From sequence record MN871440.1: a stretch of DNA of 64,000 nucleotides; one strand, written 5' to 3'. Shown here one piece after another: positions 7,820 to 50,979 of this stretch (positions are counted from its first letter, which is position 1; each line of letters starts with the position of its first letter). The notes below the pieces were generated by a model that did not search any database, was not told the origin of the DNA, and worked only from the letters and a program-made list of their open reading frames with translations. The translations under genes were made by a program, and so were the position numbers.

Positions 7820-7861
7820 TATTCACCCTTAAAGTTATTTGCTAATACTGTTATTTAGTAA

Positions 7862-36456: not shown

Positions 36457-36526
36457 TGTTTACTCTATTAAAACACTGTGCTATCATTATCACATGCTCT
36501 TAAAGTAGAGCATAAATAAAAGATAG

Positions 36527-36555
36527 TTTACAGCGTTGATAAACCGTGATACAAT
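36527..36555 (+). promoter_or_regulatory. sigma70-like promoter
   Basis: TTTACA-17-TACAAT; predicted start coincides with the RNA at 36563. Confidence 0.75.
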
Positions 36556-36562
36556 CTTTATA

Positions 36563-36616
36563 AGGCTCCGTTCAGCAATCAAAACTTTTCTGCGGATGAA
36601 AAACAAAAGTGAGCCT
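36563..36616 (+). ncRNA. family A (helix + TTCAGCAA) RNA, copy 1
   Basis: AGGCTC-CG-TTCAGCAATC...AAAAGT-GAGCCT. Confidence 0.65.
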
Positions 36617-36644
36617 GTTAGAGTAAAGATTTAAGAAGTCTTTA

Positions 36645-36673
36645 TTTACAATCACTAAATAGTAGTGTATAGT
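36645..36673 (+). promoter_or_regulatory. sigma70-like promoter with an overlapping CTAAATA
   Basis: TTTACA-17-TATAGT. Confidence 0.7.
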
Positions 36674-36685
36674 AAACAAAGATAA

Positions 36686-36748
36686 AGAGTGATTTCAGCA
36701 ACCAACTTAAAAAGCCATTATTTTGAAATAGCCTATAAAGTTCACTCT
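36686..36748 (+). ncRNA. family A RNA, copy 2
   Basis: AGAGTGA-T-TTCAGCAACC...TAAAGT-TCACTCT. Confidence 0.65.
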
Positions 36749-36774
36749 GTTTCTTATTTGCAAGTTGTTATTTG

Positions 36775-36855
36775 GGAGACGTGGCTCAAAGGTTGAGCGA
36801 CGGACTGTTAATCCGTGAGGTTAACTCTATGCTGGTTCGAGTCCAGCCGTCTCCG
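36775..36855 (+). tRNA. tRNA-Asn(GTT) with a long variable arm
   Basis: ACGGA-CT-GTT-AA-TCCGT; 14-nt variable region; ends G-CAA. Confidence 0.88.
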
Positions 36856-36878
36856 CAAATAACAATTTACCGTGCTAC

Positions 36879-36985
36879 GGAAGATTTCAGCAAACCATTC
36901 GAATTTTTCTATTAACAAGAAAACAGTGAGGTTCGATTCCTCAACTCTCTAGCACAAGAGTCCAGGTGGCAGTTAAAAGTCTTCT
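36879..36985 (+). ncRNA. family A RNA, copy 3, with an internal T arm
   Basis: GGAAGA-T-TTCAGCAAACC...TGAGG-TTCGATT-CCTCA...AAAAG-TCTTCT. Confidence 0.7.
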
Positions 36986-36992
36986 AGTTTAT

Positions 36993-37067
36993 AGCCATGT
37001 AGCTCAGTGGTAGAGCACACCCCTGATAAGGGTGGGGTCGGCAGTTCAATCCTGCCCATGGCTACCA
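36993..37067 (+). tRNA. tRNA-Ile(GAT)
   Basis: Cloverleaf with CCA. Confidence 0.95.
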
Positions 37068-37073
37068 GTTTCT

Positions 37074-37150
37074 AGTGACGTAGTTTAGTTGGTTAAAATT
37101 CCGGCCTGTCACGTCGGAGAGCGCGGGTTCGAGCCCCGTCGTCACTGCCA
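37074..37150 (+). tRNA. tRNA-Asp(GTC)
   Basis: Cloverleaf with CCA. Confidence 0.95.
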
Positions 37151-37213
37151 GTTTCTACCTAGTAGGAAAAATGAACTTACCCGACAGTAGTTCAATGTTC
37201 TTTGAAAATGCAT

Positions 37214-37356
37214 GGATTCACTTCTGCAACCAATACAAAACTTCAAATCTACTATTAAAAGATAGCACTCCTTTACTTCGGTAGTTGGATGTGCGGCTGA
37301 GAGGGAACAGCAGGTAAAAGTAACGTGGGTTAGTCACCACTCCCGTATGTGAATCC
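37214..37356 (+). ncRNA. family A RNA, copy 4 (multi-hairpin)
   Basis: GGATTCAC-TTCTGCAACC...GTGAATCC. Confidence 0.55.
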
Positions 37357-37425
37357 GAAGACTTGCGTAGGTACTTGCATAAAGTGCCTATTCTAATGTA
37401 TACTTGCGAGTATCTATTAGAATTT

Positions 37426-37499
37426 GGGGGTTTAGCTCAGTTGGAACGAGCGACTGGTTTGCAACCAGTAGGTCAAGGGTTCGAGCCCCTTAACCTCCA
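37426..37499 (+). tRNA. tRNA-Ala(TGC)
   Basis: Cloverleaf; ends A-CAA. Confidence 0.93.
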
Positions 37500-37568
37500 C
37501 AAATTTTTAGAGTAGCTATCAGCTCACCGTTGAAAGAATACGGATAAGTCGGCTCGACTACTCGAAGT

Positions 37569-37642
37569 GCCTCATTGGTGTAGTGGTCACATACCGTCCT
37601 TCCAAGTCGTAGTGTCGGGTTCGATTCCCGAATGAGGCTCCA
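37569..37642 (+). tRNA. tRNA-Gly(TCC)
   Basis: Cloverleaf with CCA; weak anticodon stem. Confidence 0.85.
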
Positions 37643-37651
37643 ATTTAACAT

Positions 37652-37726
37652 GCGCAGGTAGCCAAGAGGTAAGGCAAGTGATTGCAAATCACTTTATCGT
37701 CTGTTCGATCCAGATCCTGTGCTCCA
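37652..37726 (+). tRNA. tRNA-Cys(GCA)
   Basis: Cloverleaf with U73-CCA. Confidence 0.95.
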
Positions 37727-37742
37727 AATTGAGAAATAAGTT

Positions 37743-38165
37743 ATGAGCGCACCTAGTTGGGCGCTGTTCATGAAGAACGGCGATTGTGTTGGACACTGCT
37801 TTATCAACTGCGGTTGGTTTCAAGATGATGTTCGAACACTGAGGCAGATCATTAGATATACAGAAACGCCTGAATGTCCTATTGACTTTGATAGCGTAAT
37901 CGCGTATGGTGTTGTCTATAGCGATGATTTGGAATTCGAACTTCTGAAAGCAGAAGAGACGGAAATCAAGTCTAAGCAGATTTCGGCGATTAAAAGACAA
38001 CAGTATTGGGATAAAGGAAATCAAGTGATCTTCAATAGACTTTCTGTTAGTCCTAGACTCGCTCCAAAGCTGATTGCTGATGAAATTTGCGGTGTTCAGC
38101 CTATGTCTGAACATACTTCGAAAATCTATACGCTAAGGGTTGACACCGATGTTGTTTCTTGCTAA
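37743..38165 (+). CDS. hypothetical protein
   Basis: ORF between tRNAs. Confidence 0.65.
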   Translation: MSAPSWALFMKNGDCVGHCFINCGWFQDDVRTLRQIIRYTETPECPIDFDSVIAYGVVYSDDLEFELLKAEETEIKSKQISAIKRQQYWDKGNQVIFNRLSVSPRLAPKLIADEICGVQPMSEHTSKIYTLRVDTDVVSC

Positions 38166-38175
38166 GATACGTTAT

Positions 38176-38349
38176 ATGAAAAGCGAATACATGGGATCAT
38201 CTAAGTCATTCGATACCATTAAGTTGGTAGAAGCGGAAGATGTGGATGATGCCGATTGTAAAGTTCGCGCACATTACAACGATAAAAGTTCGGATTACGG
38301 CACGTATTATTCCGTTCTTGATGTCACAATCGAAGCTCCTATTCTGTAG
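38176..38349 (+). CDS. hypothetical protein
   Basis: ORF. Confidence 0.55.
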   Translation: MKSEYMGSSKSFDTIKLVEAEDVDDADCKVRAHYNDKSSDYGTYYSVLDVTIEAPIL

Positions 38350-38356
38350 GTGAAAA

Positions 38357-38536
38357 ATGAATAAAGTAAGGTTTACAAAGCTTGAGGTTCAGCGTATGAT
38401 GGAACTCATGCAGATGCACGAAACGAACTTGATTGATGTTGAATATCAAAGCGGTTCAATCGGTACTGTAGTTAGTGCTAAAGCTGTCAAAGATGGAGCA
38501 AAGAGCGTTCCTATTACGGATTTTGATAGCTGGTAA
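38357..38536 (+). CDS. hypothetical protein (59 aa; not in the ORF track)
   Basis: AGGTG RBS; MNKVRFTKLEVQRMMELMQ... Confidence 0.55.
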   Translation: MNKVRFTKLEVQRMMELMQMHETNLIDVEYQSGSIGTVVSAKAVKDGAKSVPITDFDSW

Positions 38537-38542
38537 GAATAT

Positions 38543-38613
38543 AGGGGCGTAGCAAATCGGTTATGCGGCGGATTCCAAATCCGTTGAGGTGGGTTCGACT
38601 CCTACCGCCCCTG
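38543..38613 (+). tRNA. tRNA-Trp(CCA)
   Basis: GCGGA-TT-CCA-AA-TCCGT; ends G-CAA. Confidence 0.9.
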
Positions 38614-38622
38614 CAAAACAAT

Positions 38623-38698
38623 GCGCTGTTAGCTCAATTGGTAGAGCTGCGGACCTTTAACCGATAGGTTGGTGGATCATACCCACCACGGCGGACCA
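38623..38698 (+). pseudogene. degenerate tRNA-Lys(TTT)
   Basis: Good D arm and CCA, but the anticodon stem is out of register (apparent 1-nt deletion), T loop is ATCATAC and 1:72 is G-G. Confidence 0.7.
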
Positions 38699-38890
38699 AA
38701 TAGTCGAGTCAAGCAATAGGCTATATACTTATTGCGTGGCGATAGGCTATAAAAAGCGGTGATTGTTGTGTGGGGCGAATAACTTAAACGTTACTATTGA
38801 CACCAACGCGCTTCTTATACTGCGGCCTATATAGCGGTAGTATAAGTTAAATCAATATTATTGCCTCGGTATCGACTCTTGATACCGTAT

Positions 38891-38965
38891 AGTGAATTAG
38901 CTCAGTGGTAGAGCAAGTGCTTCATACGCACTGGGTCACTGGTTCGAATCCAGTATTCACTACCA
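38891..38965 (+). tRNA. tRNA-Met(CAT), elongator type
   Basis: Cloverleaf with CCA. Confidence 0.9.
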
Positions 38966-39012
38966 AATTCAATCGCGCTTAAACCTCTGACTCGTTACGT
39001 TTAAGCCTTCTC

Positions 39013-39085
39013 GGGGACGTAGATAACTTCATAATCGCAGGTCACTGGGATCTGAGATACGAGTGGAAATCCCGCCGTCTCCACC
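39013..39085 (+). ncRNA. degenerate tRNA-like RNA with CCA
   Basis: GGGGACG/CGTCTCC-A-CCA acceptor stem; non-canonical D and T arms; 5-nt central loop. Confidence 0.5.
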
Positions 39086-39216
39086 AAATTTAAGTGCATT
39101 GCCCTAACCTAAATGGGACGAGATAAGCCCTCGTATGTAGCTAAGAGCCGCAAGCTTGTGCGAACAAAGGCTAGTAGGTGGGAACCACCTGCGGGGATCG
39201 CGACAGTGCATTTAAA
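39086..39216 (+). ncRNA. structured ncRNA, family B copy 2
   Basis: 16-bp terminal stem AAATTTAAGTGCATTG/CAGTGCATTTAAATTT; internal hairpins. Confidence 0.65.
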
Positions 39217-39257
39217 TTTGGTACTAAATAGACTTGCTATTAAAGGAGTTTATAGAA

Positions 39258-39497
39258 ATGAGCAATGATTTAGACGCTCGCGCCAATCGTGGCTCGGGTA
39301 ATCAGTGTAGTGCAGCATGGTACAATGCCCCTTTGTGGAAGAACGTTGGACCGCTTGCTAGAAAGAAAGCTGCGGAAGCAGCAGAAAAAGAAAAACAAAA
39401 AGATGTTTACTCTACTGCGGAAACATGCGATAATGTCTCTGTTGTCGAAGAAGACTTAAAAGCAAAACAAAGACGATTGTTTAGTTTCGCTTACTGA
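39258..39497 (+). CDS. hypothetical protein, probably late
   Basis: AAGGAG RBS; CTAAATA at 39224. Confidence 0.6.
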   Translation: MSNDLDARANRGSGNQCSAAWYNAPLWKNVGPLARKKAAEAAEKEKQKDVYSTAETCDNVSVVEEDLKAKQRRLFSFAY

Positions 39498-39501
39498 CAG
39501 A

Positions 39502-39577
39502 TCTCCGTTCGTCTAGTGGACTAGGACACTGCCCTTTCACGGCGGTAACATGGATTCGAATTCCATACGGAGAACCA
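39502..39577 (+). tRNA. tRNA-Glu(TTC)
   Basis: Cloverleaf with CCA. Confidence 0.95.
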
Positions 39578-39597
39578 AATTGATTAGTGCGCTAAGA

Positions 39598-39671
39598 TGC
39601 GAGTTGGAGGAGAGGCCGTCCTCGCTGGGCTCATATCCCAGAGATCACCTGTTCGAATCAGGTACTCGCTT
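39598..39671 (+). tRNA. initiator-type tRNA-Met(CAT) without CCA, inside an extended stem
   Basis: 1:72 mismatch and three G-C pairs in the anticodon stem; flanks AGTGCGCTAAGA/TCTTAGCGTACT pair. Confidence 0.75.
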
Positions 39672-39696
39672 CTTAGCGTACTAAATAAAGAATAAT

Positions 39697-39788
39697 GGAT
39701 GTGCTGCAATGACGGTGGTATTGCACCAGACTGTAAATCTGGCCCCACAGGGTAAACGTTGTAGGTTCGAATCCTACCGCATCCACCA
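39697..39788 (+). tRNA. tRNA-Tyr(GTA)
   Basis: Cloverleaf, long variable arm, CCA. Confidence 0.95.
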
Positions 39789-39797
39789 ATTTAAAAC

Positions 39798-39882
39798 GCT
39801 CGGTTGGCAGAGTGGTTGAATGCACTGGTTTTGTAATCCAGACCGAAAGGCATCGCAAGTTCGAATCTTGTGCCGAGCACCA
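39798..39882 (+). tRNA. tRNA-Thr(TGT) on a Ser/Leu-like type II body
   Basis: Loop TT-TGT-AA; long variable arm; G1-C72, C2-G71; CCA. Confidence 0.75.
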
Positions 39883-39963
39883 TAAGAGGGATCCAGATGC
39901 CCCGTTTGTAGCATCTGGTGTGTAACTCGTTACATAAATGCTTTCTTTCGAGTGATCATTTAT

Positions 39964-40039
39964 GTGGCGGTAGTTCAGTTGGTAGAACTCCAGGTTGTGA
40001 TCCTGGTAGTCACGGGTTCGAAGCCCGTCCGTCACCCCA
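39964..40039 (+). tRNA. tRNA-His(GTG)
   Basis: Cloverleaf, C73-CCA; position -1 is T rather than G. Confidence 0.93.
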
Positions 40040-40046
40040 AAATTTT

Positions 40047-40123
40047 GCATCGGTAACTCAGTATGGTAGAGTGGCGGATTGAAAATCCGCTGGTCACTGG
40101 TTCAAGTCCAGTCCGATGCACCA
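40047..40123 (+). tRNA. tRNA-Phe(GAA)
   Basis: Cloverleaf with CCA. Confidence 0.95.
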
Positions 40124-40148
40124 AGTTCAATCGCTTTGAAAGGTGAAA

Positions 40149-40256
40149 TCGCTAATGCTTTTAAGTGCAATGAGATAGCTTCTCGAAAGTCGGGATATAG
40201 ATTGCCCCGTCGGTATTGATTTCATGTGGAGTTCGATTCTCTACCTTAGCGTCCCA
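40149..40256 (+). ncRNA. tRNA-like RNA with an expanded anticodon domain and CCA
   Basis: CGCTAA/TTAGCG acceptor stem; T arm GTGGAG-TTCGATT-CTCTAC; ATGAGAT/ATTTCAT stem enclosing about 40 nt. Confidence 0.65.
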
Positions 40257-40271
40257 TTTTATAAGAATATT

Positions 40272-40345
40272 CCGTCATTAGCGCAGTCCGGTAGCGCATC
40301 TGGTTTGGGATCAGAGGGTCATAGGTTCAAATCCTATATGACGGA
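40272..40345 (+). tRNA. tRNA-Pro(TGG)
   Basis: Cloverleaf; ends A-CAA. Confidence 0.93.
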
Positions 40346-40458
40346 CAAAATTGATTCAGCGTTGCGTTGAATGATGTGGGGTTACACAAAGTAGGATTAA
40401 GTTACCGAAACGATAAGACGATGACCCACGTTAAACGTTCATATTCGTCCCAGTTTAT

Positions 40459-40531
40459 AGGGGTATAGCCAAGTTGGTAAGGCAACGGACTTTGATTCCG
40501 TCATGCACTGGTTCGAGCCCAGTTACCCCCG
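40459..40531 (+). tRNA. tRNA-Gln(TTG)
   Basis: Cloverleaf; CCA not encoded. Confidence 0.9.
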
Positions 40532-40672
40532 CATTTTTAGCTTGCTAAAGGCTAAATGAGCTGCTATGATTCCCGTAGCTCGTTAAATTATCAAACGGGA
40601 AGGTGATGCGCGTGTGTAGCCAGAACGTAATGTTCAAGAGTCATGACGACATAAAGCCGTGTCGAAGAATTT

Positions 40673-40767
40673 GGAAGCGTGGCAGAGTCCGGCTTATTGC
40701 ACCAGTCTTGAAAACTGACGGCGAGGTATCCCCTCGTCCATCCGTTCGAATCGGATCGCTTCCGCCA
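40673..40767 (+). tRNA. tRNA-Ser(TGA)
   Basis: Type II cloverleaf, G73-CCA. Confidence 0.95.
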
Positions 40768-40791
40768 AATCAAACAATAGAGAGTTATATC

Positions 40792-41013
40792 ATGAAAGCA
40801 ACAAAACAAGATCTTGAGCTGGCATCCCGTTTCGCTGATAAAGCTGATTCATACGGTTTCGCTACTACTCAAGGTGATGCTAAGTGTACCAATCAACAGA
40901 TTGAAAAGCTGTTAAAACTTGGACTTATCAAAGTTAGTCGCGGTGTTCATTGCATTGGACAAAAAGACTTTGGCGGTTTTGTTCGAAGAGGAACTCACTA
41001 TTGCAAAGCTTAA
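40792..41013 (+). CDS. hypothetical protein
   Basis: ORF, AGAG RBS. Confidence 0.55.
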   Translation: MKATKQDLELASRFADKADSYGFATTQGDAKCTNQQIEKLLKLGLIKVSRGVHCIGQKDFGGFVRRGTHYCKA

Positions 41014-41123
41014 AACAAGAGATCGAGGAAAACGTAAGAGCCTCGTTCGTGTTATCCGGTCAGCGTGTTACTGATTCTCAATGGGAACAGATTAAACGAG
41101 CTGCTGAATACATCAAAGAACAT

Positions 41124-41211
41124 GGAGAAATGACAGAGAGGCCGAACGTAGCGGATTGCTAATTCGTAGGCCCGCAAGGGTCCGTGGGTTCGAATCCCAC
41201 TTTCTCCTCCA
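41124..41211 (+). tRNA. tRNA-Ser(GCT)
   Basis: Type II cloverleaf with CCA; discriminator is T. Confidence 0.9.
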
Positions 41212-41217
41212 AATAAT

Positions 41218-41302
41218 GCGGATGTGGTGAAATTGGCAGTCACACTAGATTTAGGATCTAGCGCCTCCGGGCATGTCGGTTCGAGTCCGACCATCCGTAC
41301 CA
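41218..41302 (+). tRNA. tRNA-Leu(TAG)
   Basis: Type II cloverleaf with CCA. Confidence 0.95.
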
Positions 41303-41310
41303 GATAAATA

Positions 41311-41334
41311 AAGGGGAGCTTCGGCTCCCTTTTT
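41311..41334 (+). terminator. intrinsic terminator ending the tRNA run
   Basis: GGGGAGC-TTCG-GCTCCC-TTTTT. Confidence 0.85.
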
Positions 41335-41349
41335 CATTAGGAGAATACA

Positions 41350-41742
41350 ATGAGTAGTTCATTTAAAGATTTCAAAGGCGATACGAACTCAAGCGTTGGT
41401 GATCTAATCTGCAAGCTGTTGAAAAGCGTGGCCTACGTTCACCACAATCATCTGGTGACGACCGTCTATAGCAGACATATGGCACTAAACGAATATTACA
41501 CAAGCTTACCTGAGTTGGTAGATGCGTTTGCCGAGGCTTCTATTGCTCGCGGTTATGCTCAGACATTTTCTGTGTCACATGCGGAAGTTGAAGTTGAAAT
41601 GTTGATTGACAATTTCCTGCAAGAGTGTACTATGGTGCATGAGTATCTGGAAACCAAACGTCATTTCGATCTGGTAAATCTGTTGGAAGACATCATGAGT
41701 TTCATGAGTTCTATTCGATACAAACTGAATCTTAAAGGTTGA
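41350..41742 (+). CDS. ferritin/Dps-like four-helix protein (DUF5856-like)
   Basis: HHNHL...YSRHMALNEYY..LPELVDAFAE; YKLNL C-terminus. Confidence 0.6.
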   Translation: MSSSFKDFKGDTNSSVGDLICKLLKSVAYVHHNHLVTTVYSRHMALNEYYTSLPELVDAFAEASIARGYAQTFSVSHAEVEVEMLIDNFLQECTMVHEYLETKRHFDLVNLLEDIMSFMSSIRYKLNLKG

Positions 41743-41767
41743 CAACAAATAGGGACTATGTAATAAT
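41739..41767 (+). promoter_or_regulatory. early promoter for the split tRNA; -10 box flanked by an inverted repeat
   Basis: TTGACA...TAATAAT with ATAGGGAC/GTTCCTAT flanks. Confidence 0.75.
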
Positions 41768-41784
41768 GGTTCCTATAAACAAAC

Positions 41785-42550
41785 GGCCCCGTAGCTAGAG
41801 GGTTCAAGCAGGCGGCTCACATCGTCTCTTAGATGTATAAATAGATTCATAATCTAGGAGACATTAAATGAACTGCGTATATTGCGACAAAACATGTAAG
41901 AACACAAATTCACTGAGACAGCATGAAATCAGGTGCTCGAAAAATCCAAATAAAATACAGTTTCATTGTCCGAGTAGAAAAGGACAGAAAGGCGGAAATA
42001 AGTACACAAAAGCCGCGAAACTTGGATTGGATAAGCCGATTATCTCAGAAGAAACCAGAAAACGATTATCGGAATCCTCTAAGATGCAAAACCAATTTAG
42101 ATGGACACCCGAAGCTAGACAAAAGTTTTCTGATGTTATGAAAGCGGTTGTTAGAAACAATCCGGATTCTTACAGTAAAAATAACGTATCTGGTCGCGTT
42201 AAGATGTATACGTTTGAAGGACAAACTTTCAAAGGAAAGTGGGAATTATTGGTTGCAAAGTGCCTTAGTTCTGTTAAGATTGAATACACAAACGATGTTT
42301 CTCCATTTGAGTATGAGTGGGAAGGAAACAAACACTTATATTTTCCTGACTTTTATCTACCTTCTCTCGATCTTTATATCGAAGTAAAAGGTTACGAGAG
42401 GGAAAGAGACAGATGTAAGTGGAAATCGGTTGACAATCTCGTTGTCCTTAAAAGTTCACATATTAAAGAACTGGAAAGTGGTAAATCCATAATCGAGTTC
42501 TTGTGAAGAATAACCGCTCGTTGTGGGTTCGATTCCCACCGGGGCAACCA
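41785..42550 (+). tRNA. tRNA-Ile2(CAT) split in the anticodon by a 691-bp insertion (exons 41785-41819 and 42511-42550)
   Basis: Joined halves give GGCCCCG...GGCGG-CT-CAT-AA-CCGCT...CGGGGCA-A-CCA, an ileX-like cloverleaf. Confidence 0.85.
41868..42506 (+). mobile_element. putative homing endonuclease, PD-(D/E)xK type, with an N-terminal Zn finger and NUMOD3-like motifs
   Basis: CxxC...H...C; ISEETRKRLS; YFPDFYLP...YIEVKG; lies inside the tRNA gene. Confidence 0.8.
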
Positions 42551-42571
42551 AATTCATTTGAGGAAATAATT

Positions 42572-42778
42572 ATGTTTTATGTTGTAATTCGCTCATTCTT
42601 TGATATAGAATACGGTGGAGAATATAAAGAGTTCTATGCCGTTCGCACCAACAAAAAGATCGCTGAATCTGTTGTTGCTCGCGCTACAGTCGAGTATTCT
42701 GAAAAGGGATACAGCGAAAGCTACCGTTTCTCAATGGAAGAACATACCGAAGAAAGCTTTGGTGATTTGGATGTATAA
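42572..42778 (+). CDS. hypothetical protein
   Basis: GAGG RBS. Confidence 0.6.
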   Translation: MFYVVIRSFFDIEYGGEYKEFYAVRTNKKIAESVVARATVEYSEKGYSESYRFSMEEHTEESFGDLDV

Positions 42779-42780
42779 TT

Positions 42781-43092
42781 ATGCATTATATCGACGTTGA
42801 CAAGGACAAGAAAGTCCGATTATCTCAGTTTCAACGACTCTATCTATCTCGACTATTCCACAACGGAGATCGAGTATGTCGTTATATCAACGAAATGCAT
42901 CAACAAAACAAAGTTGTCTTTGTTGCACAATCTCCGTTTAACGCGGTAGAAGACAAAAAGATGTTGATTGCCTGTGCTAGTGAGTTCGCATTCAATCGAG
43001 AACTGGCTAGACAGAAAGACGATTTCAACTTTAAAATGCACAAGGCTTTGCACAAAGCAAACTGGGAATACGAACATGATTCTGATGATTGA
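42781..43092 (+). CDS. hypothetical protein
   Basis: ORF. Confidence 0.6.
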   Translation: MHYIDVDKDKKVRLSQFQRLYLSRLFHNGDRVCRYINEMHQQNKVVFVAQSPFNAVEDKKMLIACASEFAFNRELARQKDDFNFKMHKALHKANWEYEHDSDD

Positions 43093-43345
43093 AGGCTACA
43101 AAAAGAAAGTTGTTCATCAACGCTGGCAAATCGTGGCATTTCTCGCCAGAAAAGATATCGTGGACGAAGATTATCTGGAAGATTGTGCGGATGAAATTCG
43201 CGACATCATGAAAAGTGGTGCTGAATACTGCTATGGTGATTTGGATCCATATCGCCGTGAGATCAACGAAGCTCGTTGTTTGATTGTTAGTGATAACGAA
43301 GAGAAGTTAGCAGAAATGGTGGCAGACGCTGCCGAAGAGATCTAA
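43085..43345 (+). CDS. hypothetical protein
   Basis: ORF; start uncertain. Confidence 0.55.
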   Translation: MIEGYKKKVVHQRWQIVAFLARKDIVDEDYLEDCADEIRDIMKSGAEYCYGDLDPYRREINEARCLIVSDNEEKLAEMVADAAEEI

Positions 43346-43353
43346 TAAATAAT

Positions 43354-43438
43354 AGGTGTTAGTTGTAAGTCTCAATTGGAAGAGCTACTGGGCAGAAACC
43401 CAGTGGGGTGCGGGTTCGAGTCCCGCCTTCTGACGCCT
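43354..43438 (+). ncRNA. tRNA-like RNA with a 6-nt anticodon loop and no CCA
   Basis: D arm; ACTGGG-CAGAAA-CCCAGT; canonical T arm GCGGG-TTCGAGT-CCCGC; offset 9-bp terminal stem. Confidence 0.65.
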
Positions 43439-43520
43439 CTATAAGGAATATATGATTAGACATAAGTTTTCACACAAGGGACAGTTTTTTCATTGTTTTA
43501 ACTAACAATGGAGATCCAAA

Positions 43521-43901: not shown

Positions 43902-44007
43902 ACAGAACCCGCTTCGGCGGGTTTTTTATTGGAAAAATTCCTTGCATTGTCCCGCTGTTCTGATAAGATAGCTCTATCGAAACAACGAATCACTTGAGGA
44001 ATACATT

Positions 44008-45452
44008 ATGGCTACAATTCACGATTTTCTGTTTCCGTTTGAACTCAATGAAGGTTACCATGTTGCAATTATTGATGATCTTCGTGATACACTTTTGAAA
44101 TGCACATACAGCCGCAAGATCTCACAGTATATCTTAGATCGTTTCGGCTATAAATCTGGCGTGTATATCAACAAAGGTAAATCTCCAGAACTGTATATCA
44201 TTACCGAACGTGGTTACACTACCGTTGATAAAGCGTCCGATATCGATGTGTTTTTTGATAAAACTTGTGTTGACACACTAGACGATCTTGTGTATGCTGA
44301 AATTGATGATAGCGTTACCGAGATCGAAACGTCCGATTGTGTATACGAGCGCAGTCGTCAACTTGAACAGGAGTGGAAACCAATGTTCGGTGAGTGCATG
44401 ATCTTTGGTTACGAAGATTCAACACTGGTAGTCAAGAAAGACCACTATTTCGTTCTGAATGGTTTCTTTAACGTAGATATCAACAAACGAGGTTAATTAT
44501 GCGCAACATGACGTTTAACTCGGCAAAAGAGTTCTGGGATTTTACTCTTGAGGAACTAGCTCAGTTTGACACAATCACGGTATCATTCGCGAATGAATGT
44601 GAACTGTATAAGCGGGATCGTGGTCTAGAACTTTACTACCACATTCACCGCAAACAAAAAGTGATTGCATTCAGCCACGATTATGGCTATGATAGTATTA
44701 TTCGAACTGAAAACGAGGAATCGAAATGAAAGTCTTTGTAAAGAATATGGAAGAACTGTTGACCATGAATCTGATCGGGATTCGCATCGTTGATTGTCTT
44801 GGTAAGATCTACAATCGCAACGATGATGCCGAACAACTGTTTGAAAACGTCTTTGGCGTTCGTCCATTCGTTTTCGTGAAAGACATGTATCACGACTGTG
44901 GTAGCATCATGTCCGAGTATGGCACAATGTATACAATCGTTGGCCAACGCTTTATCAAGTTCTACGGCGCTGATAATCTGTTTATGGACGTACAGGGCGA
45001 ATGATGAAAAAAGTTCTTGCGTTTGTCGCTCTGATGTTGTTTAATAGCTCTGTGTTCGCATCATATGAAGGTGTTATTACTTGCTGGTTCCAAACCGGTG
45101 TGTATGTGAAAACACCGGATGGCACGTTGATCAACAATCTTCAATCCGATAGTATGGATCGAATTGATATTGGATGAGTATTCAGATACAACAATAAATT
45201 GTATTATGTTACCAACGCTGTGTGTTCTGTAATGAGGAATCAATAATGAAGCATGTAATTTCGCTGTATAAAGAGTATTTCAATACCGAGTCTATGTTCT
45301 ATCGTCTGCCAGCAGTCGATAAAGTCGGTGAAGTTGTAAAAGACATAATTGTGGATGATTTGTCCTTTACGCAAAACTATATCTCATTCAAATACAAAAA
45401 TGAAACCTATCTGGTTTCTGGCTGCAAACTTATTGCTAAGGAAATGAAATGA
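44008..45452 (+). CDS. run of small early hypothetical genes (44008-44496, 44499-44729, 44726-45004, 45001-45177, 45246-45452)
   Basis: Translationally coupled ORFs after the early promoter at 43942-43969. Confidence 0.6.
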
Positions 45453-45874
45453 AAAAGATTATTCAAAACGTGATGTTCGTGTGTGCCATGCTGGCTGTTG
45501 GTGCCGTTAAAGCTGATACTCTGTATGAAGTAGAAACCTCAGGTCTGATCTTCAAAGATACTCTGAGTGTAGAAGTATTCAGCGACCCGGACTATCCGAA
45601 CATTACTTGTTACGTCAACCTGCCGTCTCGCTCTATGAGCATCGAAGACCAGACTGATGTTGACATGCAGTGTGTGACCGCACCGTTCGAATCTGGCGTT
45701 GAACTGACTTCTCGCAAAAACATCTTCTCACAGAAGAAAAGCTGGTTCTTCAAAAACATGGTAATCGACCGTGTTTATGACAAAGAGCATATGAACATGG
45801 TTTACGTAAGTTACACCAAGAAAATGGATGGCGACAACGCTAGTTCCGCTATCACCGTGGTGCCTGTTCTGTAA
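45449..45874 (+). CDS. CreA-family periplasmic protein
   Basis: Signal peptide; VEVFSDPDYPNITCYV; FFKNMVIDRVYD; SAITVVPV. Confidence 0.8.
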   Translation: MKKIIQNVMFVCAMLAVGAVKADTLYEVETSGLIFKDTLSVEVFSDPDYPNITCYVNLPSRSMSIEDQTDVDMQCVTAPFESGVELTSRKNIFSQKKSWFFKNMVIDRVYDKEHMNMVYVSYTKKMDGDNASSAITVVPVL

Positions 45875-45883
45875 GGGAATTCT

Positions 45884-46210
45884 ATGATCCGTGTTCTGTT
45901 TCTTGTGTTCGTCGCGCTGTTATCTGGGTGCGGCGAACCAGAAAAGCCAATCGTGGTTCGAGAAGTGACGGCACAAGCAGCGCGATATAAGCCACAAGAG
46001 TGGAGAGGCAAGTTCTATCAAGAAGCTCGCGTTGAGTTTGATTACAACGGCATTCAAGTGTATACTATAGAAACCGGTAGCTGTACGATTGTGCCTGAGT
46101 TCAAACAAGAAACCGTTGTGTTGCTGAAAGCCGTTTATTCGAATGGAATCAAATACTACATCAAGGACGACAAATACCAAGCTAACTTTTTAGCGAAATA
46201 TTGTTACTGA
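45884..46210 (+). CDS. putative lipoprotein
   Basis: Lipobox LSGC. Confidence 0.65.
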   Translation: MIRVLFLVFVALLSGCGEPEKPIVVREVTAQAARYKPQEWRGKFYQEARVEFDYNGIQVYTIETGSCTIVPEFKQETVVLLKAVYSNGIKYYIKDDKYQANFLAKYCY

Positions 46211-46260
46211 TGTTTACTTGCCACGGAAGGCGAGCTATAGTAACAGAAAACGAGGAACTA

Positions 46261-46839
46261 ATGGCAAAGCTGTTTTTTACACATGCCGCGATGAATGTTG
46301 GTAAGAGTACACAACTGTTACAAGTTGCATACAACTACAACGAGCGCGGTCAAAACGTACTGTTGTTTAAACCTGCTTTTGATACCAGAACTGAGGGAAC
46401 AATCGGTTCTCGAATCGGGATCAATCGCGAATGTCGTTGTGTGCATCACAACGAAAATATGTTTACTTTGATTGAGAAAGAGAGTAAACTACAGAAAATT
46501 GATTGTGTACTTATTGACGAAGCACAGTTTCTAACTGAAACTCAGATCTGGCAACTGTCTGATGTAGTCGATAAGCTCGATGTCCCTGTTATGTGTTACG
46601 GACTAAGAACTGACTTTCTTGGTAATTTGTTTGAGGGTTCAAGAACTCTTTTAGCAATCGCTGATGAAATCAGACAGTTATCCGGGATCTGTGACTGTGG
46701 AAGAAAGTCATGTATGGTAGCTCGCATTGACGACGATGGTCGAGTTATTAAACGTGGTGAACAAATTTGCATTGGGGCTGAACAACGATATATTTCGTTC
46801 TGCCGCAAGTGTTGGAAAGAAAAACTGTCTCACGAATGA
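46261..46839 (+). CDS. tk: thymidine kinase
   Basis: AAMNVGKST; LIDEAQFL; CYGLRTDF; C-terminal Zn-binding Cys pairs. Confidence 0.97.
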   Translation: MAKLFFTHAAMNVGKSTQLLQVAYNYNERGQNVLLFKPAFDTRTEGTIGSRIGINRECRCVHHNENMFTLIEKESKLQKIDCVLIDEAQFLTETQIWQLSDVVDKLDVPVMCYGLRTDFLGNLFEGSRTLLAIADEIRQLSGICDCGRKSCMVARIDDDGRVIKRGEQICIGAEQRYISFCRKCWKEKLSHE

Positions 46840-46874
46840 GACTATTTTAAACAAACCTGAAAGAGGTAATTTCT

Positions 46875-48317
46875 TTGTCTAAGTTTATGAATGCAATGAC
46901 TCAAGCGCAAGCACTGGCACGTACCGCTAACGGTGCAGTTACTAACTATACCACTGGTGATAAGTGTCTGAATCTGTTTTCTCAAATCGGTTCCGCTCGC
47001 GGTAAAGATCTGAGTTCCATGTTTGTGGAAGCTTACACCGAATCTCCGGATTGGGCAGTTCGTATTCTGCAATGGGCTCGCGATATTCGCGGTGGTGCTG
47101 GTGAGCGTGAACAGTTCATTCGTCTGCTGAAACTGCTGGCACATCGTCATCAAGTTGACGCTACCGTCGTTCTGATGAACACACCGGAAATCGGTCGTTA
47201 TAAGGACGTTGTTTCAATGATTGGTACTCCAATCGAAGATGCTGCGGTCGCTATCATGGTGGACGCGATTCTGATCAAACAGAACGGTCTTGCTGCTAAG
47301 TGGGCTCCTCGCAAAGGCAAAGAAGCTGGTATTCTGGCCAAAGCTATGCGTATGACTGCTAAAGAGTATCGTCAGACAATCGTCCGTATGTCGAACACCG
47401 TTGAACAAAAAATGTGTGCTCGTCAGTGGGATGGAATTGATTTCGGTAAACTGCCGTCTGTTGCATCTGCCCGATATCAGAAAGCATTCCTGAAAAATGC
47501 GAATGAGCGTTATGTTGCTTATCTTGAGTCTCTGAAAAAGGGCGAAGCTAAGATCAACGCTGGTGCTGTGTACCCGTATGACATGATCAAATCATTGCGT
47601 ACCGGTTCTTCTGTTGCTGCTGATGCACAATGGAAAGCACAACGCGACTGGATGGCTGGCTCTACTGAAAACGTAATCGCAATGGTTGACGTTTCTGGCT
47701 CTATGAGCACCCCGACTGCCGTCGCTGGTCTGTCTGCTATGGATATCGCGATCTCTTTGGGTCTGTATATCGGTGAACGCTCTGGTGGTGTGTTCAAGAA
47801 CGAAGTGATTACCTTCGATGATAATCCTCAGTTCTACAACATCAAAGCGAAAGGCGATGATCTGCAAAGCATGGTGAATCATCTGGGACGCGCTCCGTGG
47901 GGTGGTTCTACCAACTTCGCTGGTGCATTCAAGATCATTCTTGATCGTGCCGTGAAACATCGAGTTCCGCAGTCTGATATGCCGTCTATGATGGTTGTAT
48001 TGTCTGACATGGAATTCAACGTTGCAGACGGCGGTTATAGCGGATACTATCGTATGCGTGACCGCGAACGTACCAACTTTGAGGTGATTCGTCAGACTTA
48101 CCGCGATGCTGGTTACGAAATGCCGAAACTTGTGTTCTGGAATCTTTGCCCGCGCCCGACTAACAATCCGGTGACCAAAGACGATCAAGGCACTGCGTTG
48201 GTATCTGGTTTTAGTCCTGCAATCATGGAGACAATCCTGAGTGCAAAAGAGTTTAACCCGATGCAAATCATGCTTGACAAGATCATGAGCGACCGATACG
48301 TCGGTATTGATTTCTAA
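46875..48317 (+). CDS. DUF2828-family Ro60/TROVE-like protein with a C-terminal vWA domain
   Basis: RTANGA, WARDIRGGAGERE, LAAKWAPR, KINAGAVYPYD; MIDAS DVSGSM...GSTNF...LSDMEF. Confidence 0.85.
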   Translation: MSKFMNAMTQAQALARTANGAVTNYTTGDKCLNLFSQIGSARGKDLSSMFVEAYTESPDWAVRILQWARDIRGGAGEREQFIRLLKLLAHRHQVDATVVLMNTPEIGRYKDVVSMIGTPIEDAAVAIMVDAILIKQNGLAAKWAPRKGKEAGILAKAMRMTAKEYRQTIVRMSNTVEQKMCARQWDGIDFGKLPSVASARYQKAFLKNANERYVAYLESLKKGEAKINAGAVYPYDMIKSLRTGSSVAADAQWKAQRDWMAGSTENVIAMVDVSGSMSTPTAVAGLSAMDIAISLGLYIGERSGGVFKNEVITFDDNPQFYNIKAKGDDLQSMVNHLGRAPWGGSTNFAGAFKIILDRAVKHRVPQSDMPSMMVVLSDMEFNVADGGYSGYYRMRDRERTNFEVIRQTYRDAGYEMPKLVFWNLCPRPTNNPVTKDDQGTALVSGFSPAIMETILSAKEFNPMQIMLDKIMSDRYVGIDF

Positions 48318-48321
48318 AATT

Positions 48322-48345
48322 AAGCCACCTTCGGGTGGCTTTTTT
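48322..48345 (+). terminator. intrinsic terminator (identical copies at 13273 on the minus strand, 51276 and 61347)
   Basis: AAGCCACCTTCGGGTGGCTTTTTT. Confidence 0.9.
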
Positions 48346-48393
48346 ATTGACATTATTTTCGTGATCTGAGAGAATACATAAAAGGAGAACAAT

Positions 48394-49490
48394 ATGTTCA
48401 TAAACAAAAATGATTGCGAAAAATTAAAACGGTGGGCAGATAGCGCACGATTCAAATGGAATCAAGATATTGCTACCGTTGAAACTTATCTCAAAGTGAG
48501 AACTACCACAATTGATATCCGATTCTCTTATTTGGATGTCCACGTGGCATTTGATCATATGTGGTGGGAAGATGGCGCCGTGTTCTGCGTTGAAACTGAC
48601 ATCGGAACGAAAGACATCGATACCATTATCAACGATCTGAATTCTAAGTTCGGGGATCGATTGAAAGCAAAGCTTGACGAACGCAAGAAAAAGAGCAAGA
48701 TAGACTAAATCAAATTGCTCAAAGAGAGCAACAAGAACGCGAAACCTATCTTAAACTGAAAGAGAAATTCGGAGAATAACATGTTCAAAAGTGAAGATTG
48801 CAAACGTATCGTGACGAAAGTCGAGGAACTGCGGATTGATTGGAACGCAAAAGTTTCTCAGTTCCATGATAAAGATAACATTCGTAAGTTGACAGGCAAA
48901 TATTTGAATGTTAACATGGATCTCGAAGATATGACGATTAGCGTCACGTATGAGACTGGCTGGGACGACGACTTCCACGTTTGTAGCATTGACGTAAATG
49001 TTGATGATCGGGAAATTGATGATGTTCTGGAAGATATCGAATCCGAGATTGCTCGTTCATTCCAGCATATCAAACAACGAGACGAAGAATATCGAGTCAA
49101 GAAAGAAGCGTGGGAAGCTAATCAGAAGCAACAACGCTTAGAACAATACAAGCGACTGCAAGCCGAATTCGGTCAAATTTCAACTCCAATGTAAGGATTA
49201 AAATGCGAAACGTAAACGAGTTGGTCTATAACATCAAGACTTTCAAACAAGCTATTGTCGAACACGCGAATGAAATCAAAGTGAACGGTGATTCCAACTG
49301 GGAATCAAATGATGCTATCATTGATGATGCTGGCAACGTGGAGTTCTGGTTTCACTCGCACAAAGGCGAAGGTGATCACTATCGTACCAGTTTGAATCTG
49401 AAACTGTTTACCGATGATCGTGTTATCGATCATCATTTGGCAAACTGTAAAACAGAGCTGAAAGAGAAAATCGAACATGATGGCGTCTGA
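48394..49490 (+). CDS. tandem, probably paralogous early genes (48394-48708/48779, 48781-49194, 49203-49490)
   Basis: The first two share an MFxxxDC start and a C-terminal (Y)xxL(K/Q)x(K/E)FG; promoter at 48347. Confidence 0.6.
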
Positions 49491-49680
49491 AAATCTGACT
49501 CGAATTCTCAGAACCATTGATTGCATCGGCTATGATGAAGTGAGTACAGATCCACAAGATCGACATGATTTCATTAGTCAGCATGATCATGTTGAGTTGT
49601 TGAAACGTGGATACAATTTCCACATAAGACAGATCAAACAGAACGGTTATCATGTTTTCTTGGTGATGTCAAATGTTTGA
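49477..49680 (+). CDS. hypothetical protein
   Basis: ORF. Confidence 0.55.
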   Translation: MMASENLTRILRTIDCIGYDEVSTDPQDRHDFISQHDHVELLKRGYNFHIRQIKQNGYHVFLVMSNV

Positions 49681-49993
49681 AATGCTCTATCTGCTGATAA
49701 TCGGTCATTTTGTGGCCGATTACGTCTTGCAAACTGATAGCATTGCAAGAGGAAAGAATCCTATCAACTCACCGCTCTATGGAGTGCATTGGCTTTACTG
49801 GCTAACTGCGCATAGTGCTACTCATGCGCTCGTTGTTTACATTGCAACCAAGAGCGTCTGGCTGAGTTTGACAGAGCTTGTAAGTCACTGGATCATCGAT
49901 TATGCTAAGTGTAATGGCAAAATCGGATTACACCAAGATCAGGCGCTACATATTTTTTGTAAAATTTTGATTGCTGCCTGTTTTATCGCTTGA
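49673..49993 (+). CDS. DUF3307-family membrane protein
   Basis: GHFVADYVLQ; AHSATH; HWIIDYAK; DQALH. Confidence 0.8.
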   Translation: MFEMLYLLIIGHFVADYVLQTDSIARGKNPINSPLYGVHWLYWLTAHSATHALVVYIATKSVWLSLTELVSHWIIDYAKCNGKIGLHQDQALHIFCKILIAACFIA

Positions 49994-50044
49994 CAACTAA
50001 ATCGATGTCTCTATAATGGGGACATCAACTAAGAGGAAGTTAAT

Positions 50045-50521
50045 ATGAGTATGAAAGCTTTGGCAAAACTGTTGTTCCCGAATACTTATACCGCAATCGT
50101 AGAAGAAGGCAAGTGGGCTGGGATCGAACAGAAGCGCAAAGAGTACGAAGAACAGAAAGAGAAAGATCGTTTGATCATGCTTTCATACAAACGTCCTCTT
50201 GGTATTCCCATGATCTCGTTTGATGGTTCTGGTAATGTTCGCGTCGTTGTTAACACGGATTACATGTATGACGGTGCCGTGACTAAATGTGTAGATCTGA
50301 TTTCTGGTGAAGAGTTCATTGACTTCACTACTCAGATCCGATACAGTGAGGAATTCGCGGAGCTAGTCGCACGTAATCAGATCGAAGATGTTTACGCTTT
50401 GATTCATCGCGGTAACGCCAAGATCATGAAAATGAATCCGAATCGTGAGCCGTGTGTTCGTTTGAAATTCAAGCTGGCAGTGAAAAATTTCAACGAAAAG
50501 GGTTTACCTTCTAAGAAATAA
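50045..50521 (+). CDS. hypothetical early protein
   Basis: Promoter TTGACA-16-TATAAT at 49990; GAGG RBS. Confidence 0.7.
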   Translation: MSMKALAKLLFPNTYTAIVEEGKWAGIEQKRKEYEEQKEKDRLIMLSYKRPLGIPMISFDGSGNVRVVVNTDYMYDGAVTKCVDLISGEEFIDFTTQIRYSEEFAELVARNQIEDVYALIHRGNAKIMKMNPNREPCVRLKFKLAVKNFNEKGLPSKK

Positions 50522-50531
50522 GTGTTAAGAT
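50503..50531 (+). promoter_or_regulatory. sigma70-like promoter for the tRNA-like RNA triplet
   Basis: TTTACC-17-TAAGAT with an extended TG. Confidence 0.65.
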
Positions 50532-50534
50532 AGT

Positions 50535-50665
50535 TTTGTTGTCGCGATTAGTTCAGTGGGAGAACACCTTTGATCGCAAAGAAGTATCGAGTACGGTTCG
50601 AATCCGTTATAGTGTGGGCACATCGAGAAACGTCGTTGGTTCGAATCCAACATCGCGACAACAAA
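50535..50665 (+). ncRNA. tRNA-like RNA with two T arms
   Basis: 14-bp terminal stem; D arm; GGTTCGAATCC occurs twice. Confidence 0.7.
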
Positions 50666-50666
50666 C

Positions 50667-50799
50667 AACATTATGCTGGCGGTTCGTCTAGTGGTAGGAC
50701 ACTGTAAAATTCATTCTGACAAGAATGTTTTCCGCAATAAATAATCGCCTGTTAAGCCTGTAACGCTCGGTTCGAATCCGGCACCGCCAGCATAGTGTT
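50667..50799 (+). ncRNA. tRNA-like RNA carrying the permuted family A motif
   Basis: 17-bp terminal stem, Glu-like D arm, T arm; insert CATTCT-GACA-AGAATG-TTTTCCGCAA. Confidence 0.7.
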
Positions 50800-50809
50800 G
50801 TGAAAATTT

Positions 50810-50929
50810 GGGGAAGTAGCTCAGTGGTAGAGCAGTAGACGCAAAAAGCGGAATCTGAGAAGATTCTTTACAGCAAGCCAACGCAAATTAAACTATTGGT
50901 CGCGGGTTCGAGTCCCGTCTTCCCCGCCA
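50810..50929 (+). ncRNA. tRNA-like RNA with CCA and a 54-nt anticodon insert carrying the permuted family A motif
   Basis: Canonical acceptor, D and T arms; insert GAATCT-GAGA-AGATTC-TTTACAGCAA. Confidence 0.78.
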
Positions 50930-50979
50930 AAATCTGTCATTCGTGATAGTGTATTAAAAACCACCTGTAGGAAACAAAG

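Follow-up and report, generated by a model that had tools for sequence, protein, structure and literature searches.

Handle-bearing RNAs of Aeromonas phage AsFcp_1 as probable partners of a Ro60-like DUF2828 protein

In a 64,000-nt stretch of sequence record MN871440.1 (the whole of which we call the window), we found six RNAs that share one structural element, a short helix with a conserved single-stranded motif beside it, together with a gene for a DUF2828 protein (46875-48317) that is Ro60-like in predicted fold. We refer to the shared element as the handle. The window comes from Aeromonas phage AsFcp_1 (100% identity with positions 36400-41400 as query), a T4-type phage of the PX29/Ah1/Aeh1 group in the Straboviridae. 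The six RNAs are probably the cognate non-coding partners of the DUF2828 protein, that is, analogues of Y RNAs. Three observations lead us to this view: the handle helices change in a compensatory manner among related phages, the same RNA family recurs beside DUF2828 genes and on their strand, and the modeled protein matches Ro60 over its full length. These results support the overall interpretation of an earlier reading of this DNA, which was made from its letters alone and is called the sequence-only reading below.

It is already known that DUF2828-type proteins are Ro-like: annotators and three papers call them so, and partner RNAs have only been speculated upon. The sequence-only reading knew of no described partner RNA, and we found none defined in the literature on DUF2828, phage YrlA, and phage Ro-like proteins or in Rfam 15. 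Among unexplained phage protein families, DUF2828 is one of the commoner: 710 of 50,697 phage records have members, and its protein clusters number more than 7,000; the hosts include Escherichia (E. coli), Mycobacterium, Salmonella, Vibrio, Listeria, Staphylococcus, Campylobacter, Enterococcus, and Bacillus. Two recent studies met such a protein without explaining it, one as a counter to the Ppl defense in phage Bas63 and one as an Rsr-like virion protein of a Listeria phage, and both guessed at Y RNAs. With an RNA family that has a conserved handle, four classes, and a working covariance model, this guess is now directly checkable, both structurally and against RNA-seq data that already exist.

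The shared handle and its four kinds of module

All six copies carry the handle in exactly the same register, consisting of a 7-bp helix, a 1-nt spacer, the motif U-[U/A]-C-N-G-C-A-A, and an A-rich opposite strand. Position 2 of the helix is a near-invariant G:C pair, and position 5 is mostly U:A. In copies 1 to 4, the sequence TTC(A/T)GCAA stands directly after the 5′ strand, and the helix is made by the two ends of the free-standing RNA. In copies 5 and 6, named E1 and E2, the helix is instead closed by a GNNA loop, and the RNA ends lie elsewhere; it opens with AG and closes with CT, as in the small RNAs. The embedded copies are an exact circular permutation of the handle. Coordinates of all features are given in Table 1.

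Most of this had been anticipated by the sequence-only reading, which listed six copies, noted that the helix sequences differ while the pairing is kept, recognized the circular permutation in two tRNA-like RNAs, and placed sigma70-like promoters just upstream of copies 1 and 2. Reading the sequence bore out each of these points, with copy 4 extending to 37213-37357. Two details had to be revised. The AAAGT that was said to precede the 3′ strand is seen locally, but it is only the local form of a general A-rich stretch, and the motif reported inside an anticodon region is indeed embedded in tRNA-like RNAs, but its hairpin replaces the anticodon arm and does not lie within the loop.

The small RNAs S1 and S2 (copies 1 and 2) have the simplest build. 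The helix-opening A of S1 (36563) lies 8 nt past the second promoter hexamer, and after its 5′ strand come TTCAGCAA, an inner hairpin, and an A-rich junction on the 3′ side. S1 and S2 score 43.4 and 41.3 bits, respectively, with the covariance model R1 introduced below, for which both were training sequences. The handle 3′ strand is very often followed by G-T(-T), reading ...CCTGTT, as at 36617-36619 and 36749-36751 in the window and at many other loci; this could mean that the 3′ end is processed at a conserved site or that the helix extends further.

Copy 3 is a permuted tRNA-like RNA. Besides the handle, it contains a variable hairpin; the T arm lies at 36928-36942 and the closed acceptor-like hairpin at 36944-36961, and its D region, which has GG, is degenerate. 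The outer pair of its helix is G.U here and G-C in relatives. The helix of copy 4 comprises eight Watson-Crick pairs, GGATTCAC/GTGAATCC, and an outer U.G pair, with a 3′ hairpin GGGTTAG...CCC just ahead of the 3′ strand. Its homologue in L006, a more distant relative (related loci are labeled L###), keeps the helix and has TACAGCAA in place of TTCTGCAA.

E1 and E2 are tRNA-shaped. The handle of E1 is a hairpin at 50712-50727 with a GACA loop, continued by TTCCGCAA to 50737, and it occupies the place of the anticodon arm; that of E2 is a hairpin at 50850-50867 with a GAGA loop, continued by TACAGCAA to 50876. Compared with tRNA (RF00005), both RNAs have acceptor, D, and T arms that covary, but the 5-bp anticodon stem and 7-nt loop with a conserved anticodon are missing, the handle with its GNNA loop standing in their place. 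E2 scores 54.3 bits with the Rfam tRNA model, with a 54-nt insertion, and covaries in relatives; in PX29, its annotation is tRNA-Leu with an intron, and in Aeh1, tRNA-Val. ARAGORN calls neither E1 nor E2.

Compensatory changes are present in every handle helix when relatives are compared. In S1, GGCTC/GAGCC becomes GGCTG/CAGCC in L005, and S2 shows two such changes, to GGAATGA/TCATTCC, in L002-L005. The helix of copy 3 covaries in L003, L004, L005, and L006, where GGAAGA is replaced by GAAAGA, GGAACA, GGATCA, or GGATTGC and the partner strand matches each time; its T arm and acceptor-like hairpin covary too. The acceptor, T arm, and hairpin of E1 covary across L002-L009. More widely, the embedded hairpins covary across distant phages, as do the acceptor, D, and T arms of the tRNA-like bodies.

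Across the wider collection of loci, the RNAs fall into four classes, which differ in their modules and have the handle in common. The small class (~50-65 nt), to which window copies 1 and 2 belong, is the form that most often follows the gene. The permuted tRNA-like class, or class T (copy 3), has a T arm, a loop-closed acceptor stem, and a D arm in many relatives. The large class (copy 4) carries TTCTGCAA or TACTGCAA and the 3′ GGGTTAG...CCC hairpin, and RNAs of this build stand 18-67 nt behind the DUF2828 gene in at least nine other loci. The unpermuted tRNA-shaped class (copies 5 and 6), with the handle in the anticodon-arm place, is found 0.3-2.8 kb from the gene in L007, L009, L011, L051, and L087; a CCA end is encoded in E2 and in the copies of L007 and L009. 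Relatives annotate these tRNA-shaped RNAs as intron-bearing tRNAs with inconsistent anticodons.

The permuted class has the core layout of YrlA, namely a T arm, a closed acceptor, a D arm, and ends at the anticodon-arm position. This core is clear in L039, L079, L095, L102, L138, L192, L210, and L212, whereas the D region of copy 3 is degenerate. The sequence-only reading had proposed checking Rfam for Y RNA and YrlA: in the window (36400-37450 and 50500-50960), the YrlA search gave no match at E ≤ 10, but in the relative L039, positions 8785-8845 matched positions 24-84 of YrlA (RF02553) at 41.9 bits, below the gathering score of 69. The score falls short because the ends, which are predicted to hold the protein-binding part, differ. 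Gathering and E-value scans with Rfam 15 over the window and seven related loci returned tRNA only, with no ribozyme and no Y RNA family. Small self-cleaving ribozymes, the kink-turn, and the archaeal-type bulge-helix-bulge intron signal were also considered and dropped, as they gave no match or lacked their defining sequence features.

Linkage of the RNA family to DUF2828 genes

A helix followed by CNGCAA is common and noisy, with 88 raw matches in the window; because it arises so easily by chance, we did not use it as evidence. The handle is set apart from chance by the compensatory changes in its helix, its exact register in six copies, and its strand-specific recurrence beside DUF2828 genes. 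To quantify the last of these, we used a sample of 82 non-redundant loci with DUF2828 homologues that are 41-65% identical.

The covariance model R1 was built from 28 small RNAs that were picked for having the helix, without selection for strand or position. Over both strands of the 82 loci (1.39 Mb) and at E ≤ 0.1, it returned 87 matches in 61 loci. All 87 were on the gene strand, and 61 of them lay within 700 nt of the DUF2828 gene. In the fitted alignment of 73 distinct RNAs, 98.8% of cells were paired, compared with 30-51% in slid controls, although this percentage is partly built in because the training sequences were picked for the helix. Cells changed on both sides numbered 171, against 52 in shuffles, and six of the seven helix pairs covary; in this alignment, the second pair is an invariant G:C, and the fifth is mostly U:A. 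For class T, the 3′ ends aligned poorly in MAFFT, so no pair counts are given.

On the gene strand, the 8-mer motif occurs 70 times in the first 250 nt past the stop codon, against five on the other strand, and 38 times in the next 250 nt. Elsewhere, including the opposite strand, counts were roughly 1-18 per bin, except for two intragenic bins (30 on the gene strand and 21 on the other). The motif is found within 700 nt downstream of the gene in 66 of the 82 loci, and an adjacent Watson-Crick helix of at least 7 bp accompanies 47% of these downstream matches, as opposed to 7% on the opposite strand.

Two other searches were less useful. A strict form of the embedded motif (with a CUG..AAG apex) had 24 occurrences on the gene strand against one on the opposite strand, but it misses most DUF2828 loci; the apparent absence of RNAs from those loci was overturned when the relaxed 8-mer and its position revealed small RNAs directly after the gene. 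A lenient test for a motif with helix within 3.8 kb was set aside in favor of the covariance model, since its chance rate was high (28 of the 82 loci had a hit on the wrong strand).

The association also appeared when starting from the RNA. When IMG/VR was scanned with a pattern for one helix variant, at least 120 stretches matched, and 80 of them were examined. A DUF2828 gene was present in 30 of these, always on the same strand as the RNA, which usually ended 30-90 nt before the start of the gene or lay ~110 nt past its stop.

Individual phages illustrate the range of arrangements. In Listeria phage LP-083-2 (L211), three handle RNAs stand directly upstream of the DUF2828 gene, and in Felixounavirus CL1, four lie in the tRNA block behind it. 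In Mycobacterium phage Wilder (L212), three handle RNAs are directly downstream of a gene annotated “Ro-like RNA binding protein.” The middle one (6533-6654) is a 122-nt permuted tRNA-like RNA containing a feature mis-annotated as tRNA-Asn, and small handle RNAs flank it on either side (6472-6521 and 6667-6728). Existing annotation can be corrected accordingly: the “intron-bearing tRNAs” of Aeromonas phages and the mycobacteriophage “tRNA-Asn” are tRNA-shaped or permuted tRNA-like non-coding RNAs. In L051, five tandem handle RNAs (one large, one tRNA-shaped, and three small; 9438-9990) occupy the 600 nt directly upstream of the DUF2828 gene, the densest array that we saw.

The sequence-only reading had called for a covariance model and a search for co-occurrence, and had held that relatives that keep DUF2828 should not lack the motif. 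The R1 result answers the first point, with the Listeria, Mycobacterium, and Felixounavirus phages in addition, and on the second, the motif stands beside the gene and on its strand in most of the 82 loci.

The DUF2828 protein and competing explanations

The open reading frame at 46875-48317 matches DUF7788 (1.5e-50), DUF2828 (6e-29), and, weakly, VWA_2 in Pfam. Its AlphaFold2 model, built on 40 homologues, has a pLDDT of 87.5 and a pTM of 0.87 and places N-terminal alpha-helical repeats ahead of a vWA domain, as in Ro60/TROVE proteins. When this model was compared with the PDB by Foldseek, as the sequence-only reading had suggested, the ten best matches were all Ro60/TROVE structures, aligned over its full length (E 4e-9 to 1.5e-7, TM 0.54-0.62, 507-583 aligned columns). 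They include Ro60 from frog (with RNA), from human (complexes), and from Thermus phage phiLo; 1yvr, 9kop, and 9l5y are among them, and the matches that follow are isolated vWA domains. The MIDAS motif (metal ion-dependent adhesion site; DxSxS...T...D) is complete, its residues D272, S274, S276, T346, and D378 being invariant in the 40 homologues.

Ro60 carries Y RNA outside its ring and receives single-stranded RNA ends inside; for DUF2828, what we have shown is genomic linkage to a candidate RNA family. By analogy with Ro60/Rsr and Y RNAs, the DUF2828 protein would hold the handle, and the variable module would gate the protein or tether factors such as tRNA-binding enzymes, nucleases, or repair enzymes. 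The modules are a bare hairpin in S1 and S2, a permuted tRNA mimic in copy 3, a larger domain in copy 4, and a full tRNA-shaped body in copies 5 and 6. The tRNA-shaped bodies would keep their natural ends, including the encoded CCA of E2. The likely role, again by analogy, would be RNA surveillance or repair, or counter-defense during infection.

Several observations weigh against a Ro/Y-RNA interpretation and need to be set beside it. The Pfam search of the open reading frame gave no TROVE match, and sequence comparison with the PDB was weak (phmmer E 0.84; profile E 0.045, covering only the MIDAS region of the vWA domain). The helical domain of the model is shorter than that of Ro60. In the RNAs, the YrlA motif GNCGAA(N)G is absent, U[U/A]CNGCAA taking its position in all classes, and single-sequence folding energies are unexceptional (Z-scores of -0.8 to -3.2). 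With regard to linkage, 21 of the 82 loci have no R1 match, and 50 of the 80 RNA-first stretches show no DUF2828 gene within the short contig pieces examined, although these are fragments of longer contigs and hence not decisive. In the window itself, 10 kb separates four of the six RNAs from the gene, which has a terminator-like hairpin behind it.

For the protein, full-length structural matches and an invariant MIDAS thus stand against a relation that sequence barely sees: neither a TROVE sequence model nor sequence similarity to Ro60 identifies it. We therefore regard it, on the strength of its model, as Ro60-like in fold but not a TROVE member by sequence criteria. The sequence-only reading had described a TROVE-like/vWA gene here; DUF2828, the vWA domain, and the predicted Ro60-like fold stand, and TROVE membership by sequence does not. 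The failed tests for TROVE and YrlA membership weaken a claim of belonging to those families, and not a claim of working like Ro and Y RNA.

Four other explanations were weighed. The first is that the elements act in cis, as operators in untranslated parts of the DUF2828 mRNA, through which the gene controls itself; the protein may then bind them, but there would be no free, trans-acting RNAs. At most loci, the RNA starts 7-90 nt past the stop codon or ends 30-90 nt before the start, with no terminator between, as this explanation would predict. We nevertheless find it improbable. Each of S1 and S2, 10 kb away from the gene in the window, has a promoter of its own, and copies 3-6 lie among tRNAs or have tRNA ends, so that tRNA processing would cut them out. 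Genomes have up to five or six copies, some of them 5-9 kb away, and co-transcription followed by processing is also what Chen et al. 2014 (PMC4201824) describe for the rsr-yrlA operon.

Alternatively, the handle could be a processing or stability signal of tRNA-operon transcripts, such as a host RNase site or a 5′-end protection, with DUF2828 nearby only by way of tRNA clusters. Copies 1-4 do lie at the head of or inside a tRNA cluster, copies 5 and 6 are tRNA-shaped, and the DUF2828 gene borders the tRNA block in Felixounavirus and Listeria phages. However, in L017 and L019, the handle RNAs are directly behind the gene with no tRNA gene within 21 kb, which argues against a mere tRNA-cluster signal, and the RNA-first matches are usually 30-90 nt from the start of the gene. 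Sequence-specific conserved positions and four module classes are also more in keeping with a dedicated partner than with a general RNase site, and we consider this alternative very unlikely.

We give similarly little credence to the idea that the RNAs act by themselves, as decoys or regulators, and that the proximity of DUF2828 reflects a shared pathway or co-regulation without a complex. Although tRNA-shaped modules could bind tRNA-directed host factors unaided, it is the handle, and not the module, that the four classes have in common. The RNAs are tightly and co-directionally adjacent to one gene family in phages of Proteobacteria, Firmicutes, and Actinobacteria, and that family has the fold of a known Y-RNA-binding protein.

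Finally, that copies 5 and 6 are ordinary tRNA genes with short introns and the other four unrelated hairpins is extremely improbable despite the tRNAscan-type annotation of intron-bearing or long tRNAs in PX29 and Aeh1 and the tRNA score of E2, since the anticodon differs between close relatives (Leu vs Val), no 7-nt anticodon loop is conserved, and the insert is the most conserved piece, an exact permutation of the S1-S3 handle, and strongly strand-biased in its strict form (24 to 1).

The preferred reading, in which the RNAs are partners of the DUF2828 protein, gains from comparison with the bacterial Rsr and its YrlA/YrlB RNAs in Salmonella and Deinococcus (RF02553). According to Chen et al. 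2014 (PMC4201824), these have the same type of protein with helical repeats and a vWA domain, the same co-directional small RNAs beside the gene, the same terminal stem with a conserved single-stranded motif just 3′ of the 5′ strand, and the same mix of a permuted tRNA mimic and a small tRNA-less, YrlB-like class; the layout of copy 3 is that of YrlA. Because of this parallel, we take the handle as the predicted DUF2828 binding site and the modules as putative gates or tethers. The phage system differs in that DUF2828 is not TROVE by Pfam or profiles, the handle has U[U/A]CNGCAA in place of GNCGAA(N)G, and the Rfam score is below gathering. It also has additional handle classes, namely the large class and the unpermuted tRNA-shaped class (several of whose members encode CCA), the latter adding a new form to the repertoire of tRNA-mimicking Y RNAs. 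If the handle is bound as predicted, the Ro/Y-RNA principle would extend to a second protein family, unrelated in appearance by sequence, with a different recognition motif.

Phages are known to encode TROVE-type Ro60 with Y-like RNAs, as noted for mycobacteriophages, CcrColossus, and Bacillus phage G in PMC4201824 and for Thermus phage phiLo, whose RNAs Yrl1 and Yrl2 carry a CGAA motif (PMC12135203). Here, too, the phage encodes a Ro-type protein and, next to it, at least two Y-like RNAs, and the phiLo structures 9l5y and 9kop are among our best fold matches. In contrast to DUF2828, they are annotated as TROVE and have CGAA RNAs, the identity in the structural alignment is ~16%, and DUF2828 is far more widespread.

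Leads to the role, and no more than leads, come from two published phages and from neighboring genes. In the Felixounavirus Bas63, the gene for gp130, a protein with a Ro60-like fold, stands immediately upstream of the tRNA block, and gp130 is reported to counter the Ppl defense; the authors supposed Y RNAs to be among the annotated tRNAs and defined no RNA partner (bioRxiv 10.1101/2024.10.10.617714). The DUF2828 gene of CL1 has the same position, and gp130 is presumably orthologous to DUF2828, judging from position and fold. In Listeria phage CKA15, the product of CKA15_055 matches Rsr by HHpred and was detected in virions; the gene is downstream of a tRNA cluster, with abundant non-coding RNAs upstream on the same strand (PMC12282133). 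LP-083-2 is a related phage, but the very abundant CKA15 transcripts may be a different region, ~490 nt long, from the handle RNAs. LP-083-2 has genes for an RtcB-like ligase (7857-9068) and a putative RNA ligase (10628-11512) 1.3-4 kb behind its DUF2828 gene on the same strand, which echoes the Salmonella rsr-yrlA-rtcBA operon, and another published source lists a Ro-like protein along with RNA ligase and polynucleotide kinase.

A bolder proposal, which we regard as possible but doubtful, is that DUF2828 and the handle RNAs form a modular phage ribonucleoprotein, distinct from TROVE-type Ro, that serves as a counter-defense or RNA-repair device in phages of at least three bacterial phyla. A single protein would then take RNA modules that can be exchanged for one another; complete tRNA-shaped RNAs, several of them with encoded CCA, would be among these and could engage tRNA-directed host enzymes or defense nucleases. 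In some phages, the virion may bring the protein along, so that it would be there as soon as infection begins.

Layout of the window and neighboring features

Within the window, a large tRNA cluster is followed by small early-type genes, the DUF2828 gene, and then three odd tRNA-like RNAs at 50540-50929 (Table 1). Copies 1-4 are at the head of and inside the tRNA cluster, 10 kb upstream of the DUF2828 gene, and E1 and E2 lie 2.4-2.6 kb downstream of it on the same strand, within the ~4 kb that applies to YrlA and its Ro gene. No handle RNA comes directly after the gene in AsFcp_1, where a terminator-like hairpin stands instead.

Table 1. Positions of the handle RNAs, the DUF2828 gene, and other features of the window
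Feature	Position	Strand	Description
RNA A, tRNA-like	33207-33309		normal acceptor, D, and T arms; anticodon arm ~14 bp with 16-nt loop cap
sigma70-like promoter of S1	36527..36555	+	TTTACA-17-TACAAT, 10/12 matches, TG ahead of second hexamer
S1 (copy 1), small handle RNA	36563..36616	+	54 nt; helix AGGCTC/GAGCCT
sigma70-like promoter of S2	36645..36673	+	TTTACA-17-TATAGT, 10/12 matches
S2 (copy 2), small handle RNA	36686..36748	+	63 nt; helix AGAGTGA/TCACTCT, then TTCAGCAA
Large tRNA cluster	36775-41302
Copy 3, class T permuted tRNA-like RNA	36879..36985	+	107 nt; helix GGAAGA/TCTTCT with TTCAGCAA
Copy 4, large-class (L) RNA	37213..37357	+	145 nt; 9-pair terminal helix, then TTCTGCAA
DUF2828/DUF7788 protein	46875..48317	+	480 aa; predicted Ro60-like helical domain and vWA with complete MIDAS; start may be ATG 46887
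Terminator-like hairpin	48322..48346	+	GCCACC-ttcg-GGTGGC and T run, directly 3′ of DUF2828 gene; read from sequence
RNA B, tRNA-like	50540-50661		directly upstream of E1/E2; anticodon arm a short stem with 4-nt loop, covarying in relatives
E1 (copy 5), tRNA-shaped RNA	50675..50792	+	acceptor, D, and T arms
E2 (copy 6), tRNA-shaped RNA	50810..50929	+	encoded CCA end

Two further tRNA-like RNAs, A and B, were searched for the handle, and none was found in either. RNA A is conserved and covarying in PX29, Ah1, Aeh1, avDM12, and phiWae14, where it is variously annotated as tRNA-Lys with an intron or as tRNA-Glu; it sits just past a 57B-type gene that is labeled RNA ligase in relatives. RNA B has a second T-arm-like hairpin within its long variable region, is cut by ARAGORN to a “tRNA-Ala,” and is possibly one more module-type RNA belonging to this system. 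Small stable non-tRNA RNAs, species 1 and 2 (rnaC/rnaD), are likewise encoded among the tRNA genes of T4.

Three other features in and near the tRNA cluster deserve mention. A 140-aa open reading frame within it (37743-38165) has a C-terminal end that matches the beginning of major capsid proteins of the Gp23 family (Pfam E 6.9e-07). Relatives label it “major head protein,” and it seems to be a fragment of a gene or else a small paralogue. The stretch at 38623-38695 scores as a weak tRNA in Rfam (31.4 bits) and is not called by ARAGORN; its counterpart is annotated as tRNA-Lys in PX29, Ah1, and Aeh1. Just past the cluster, in a region that varies between relatives, a 212-aa open reading frame (41868-42506) has weak zinc-finger, DUF7487, and phage endonuclease I matches and may encode a homing-type endonuclease.

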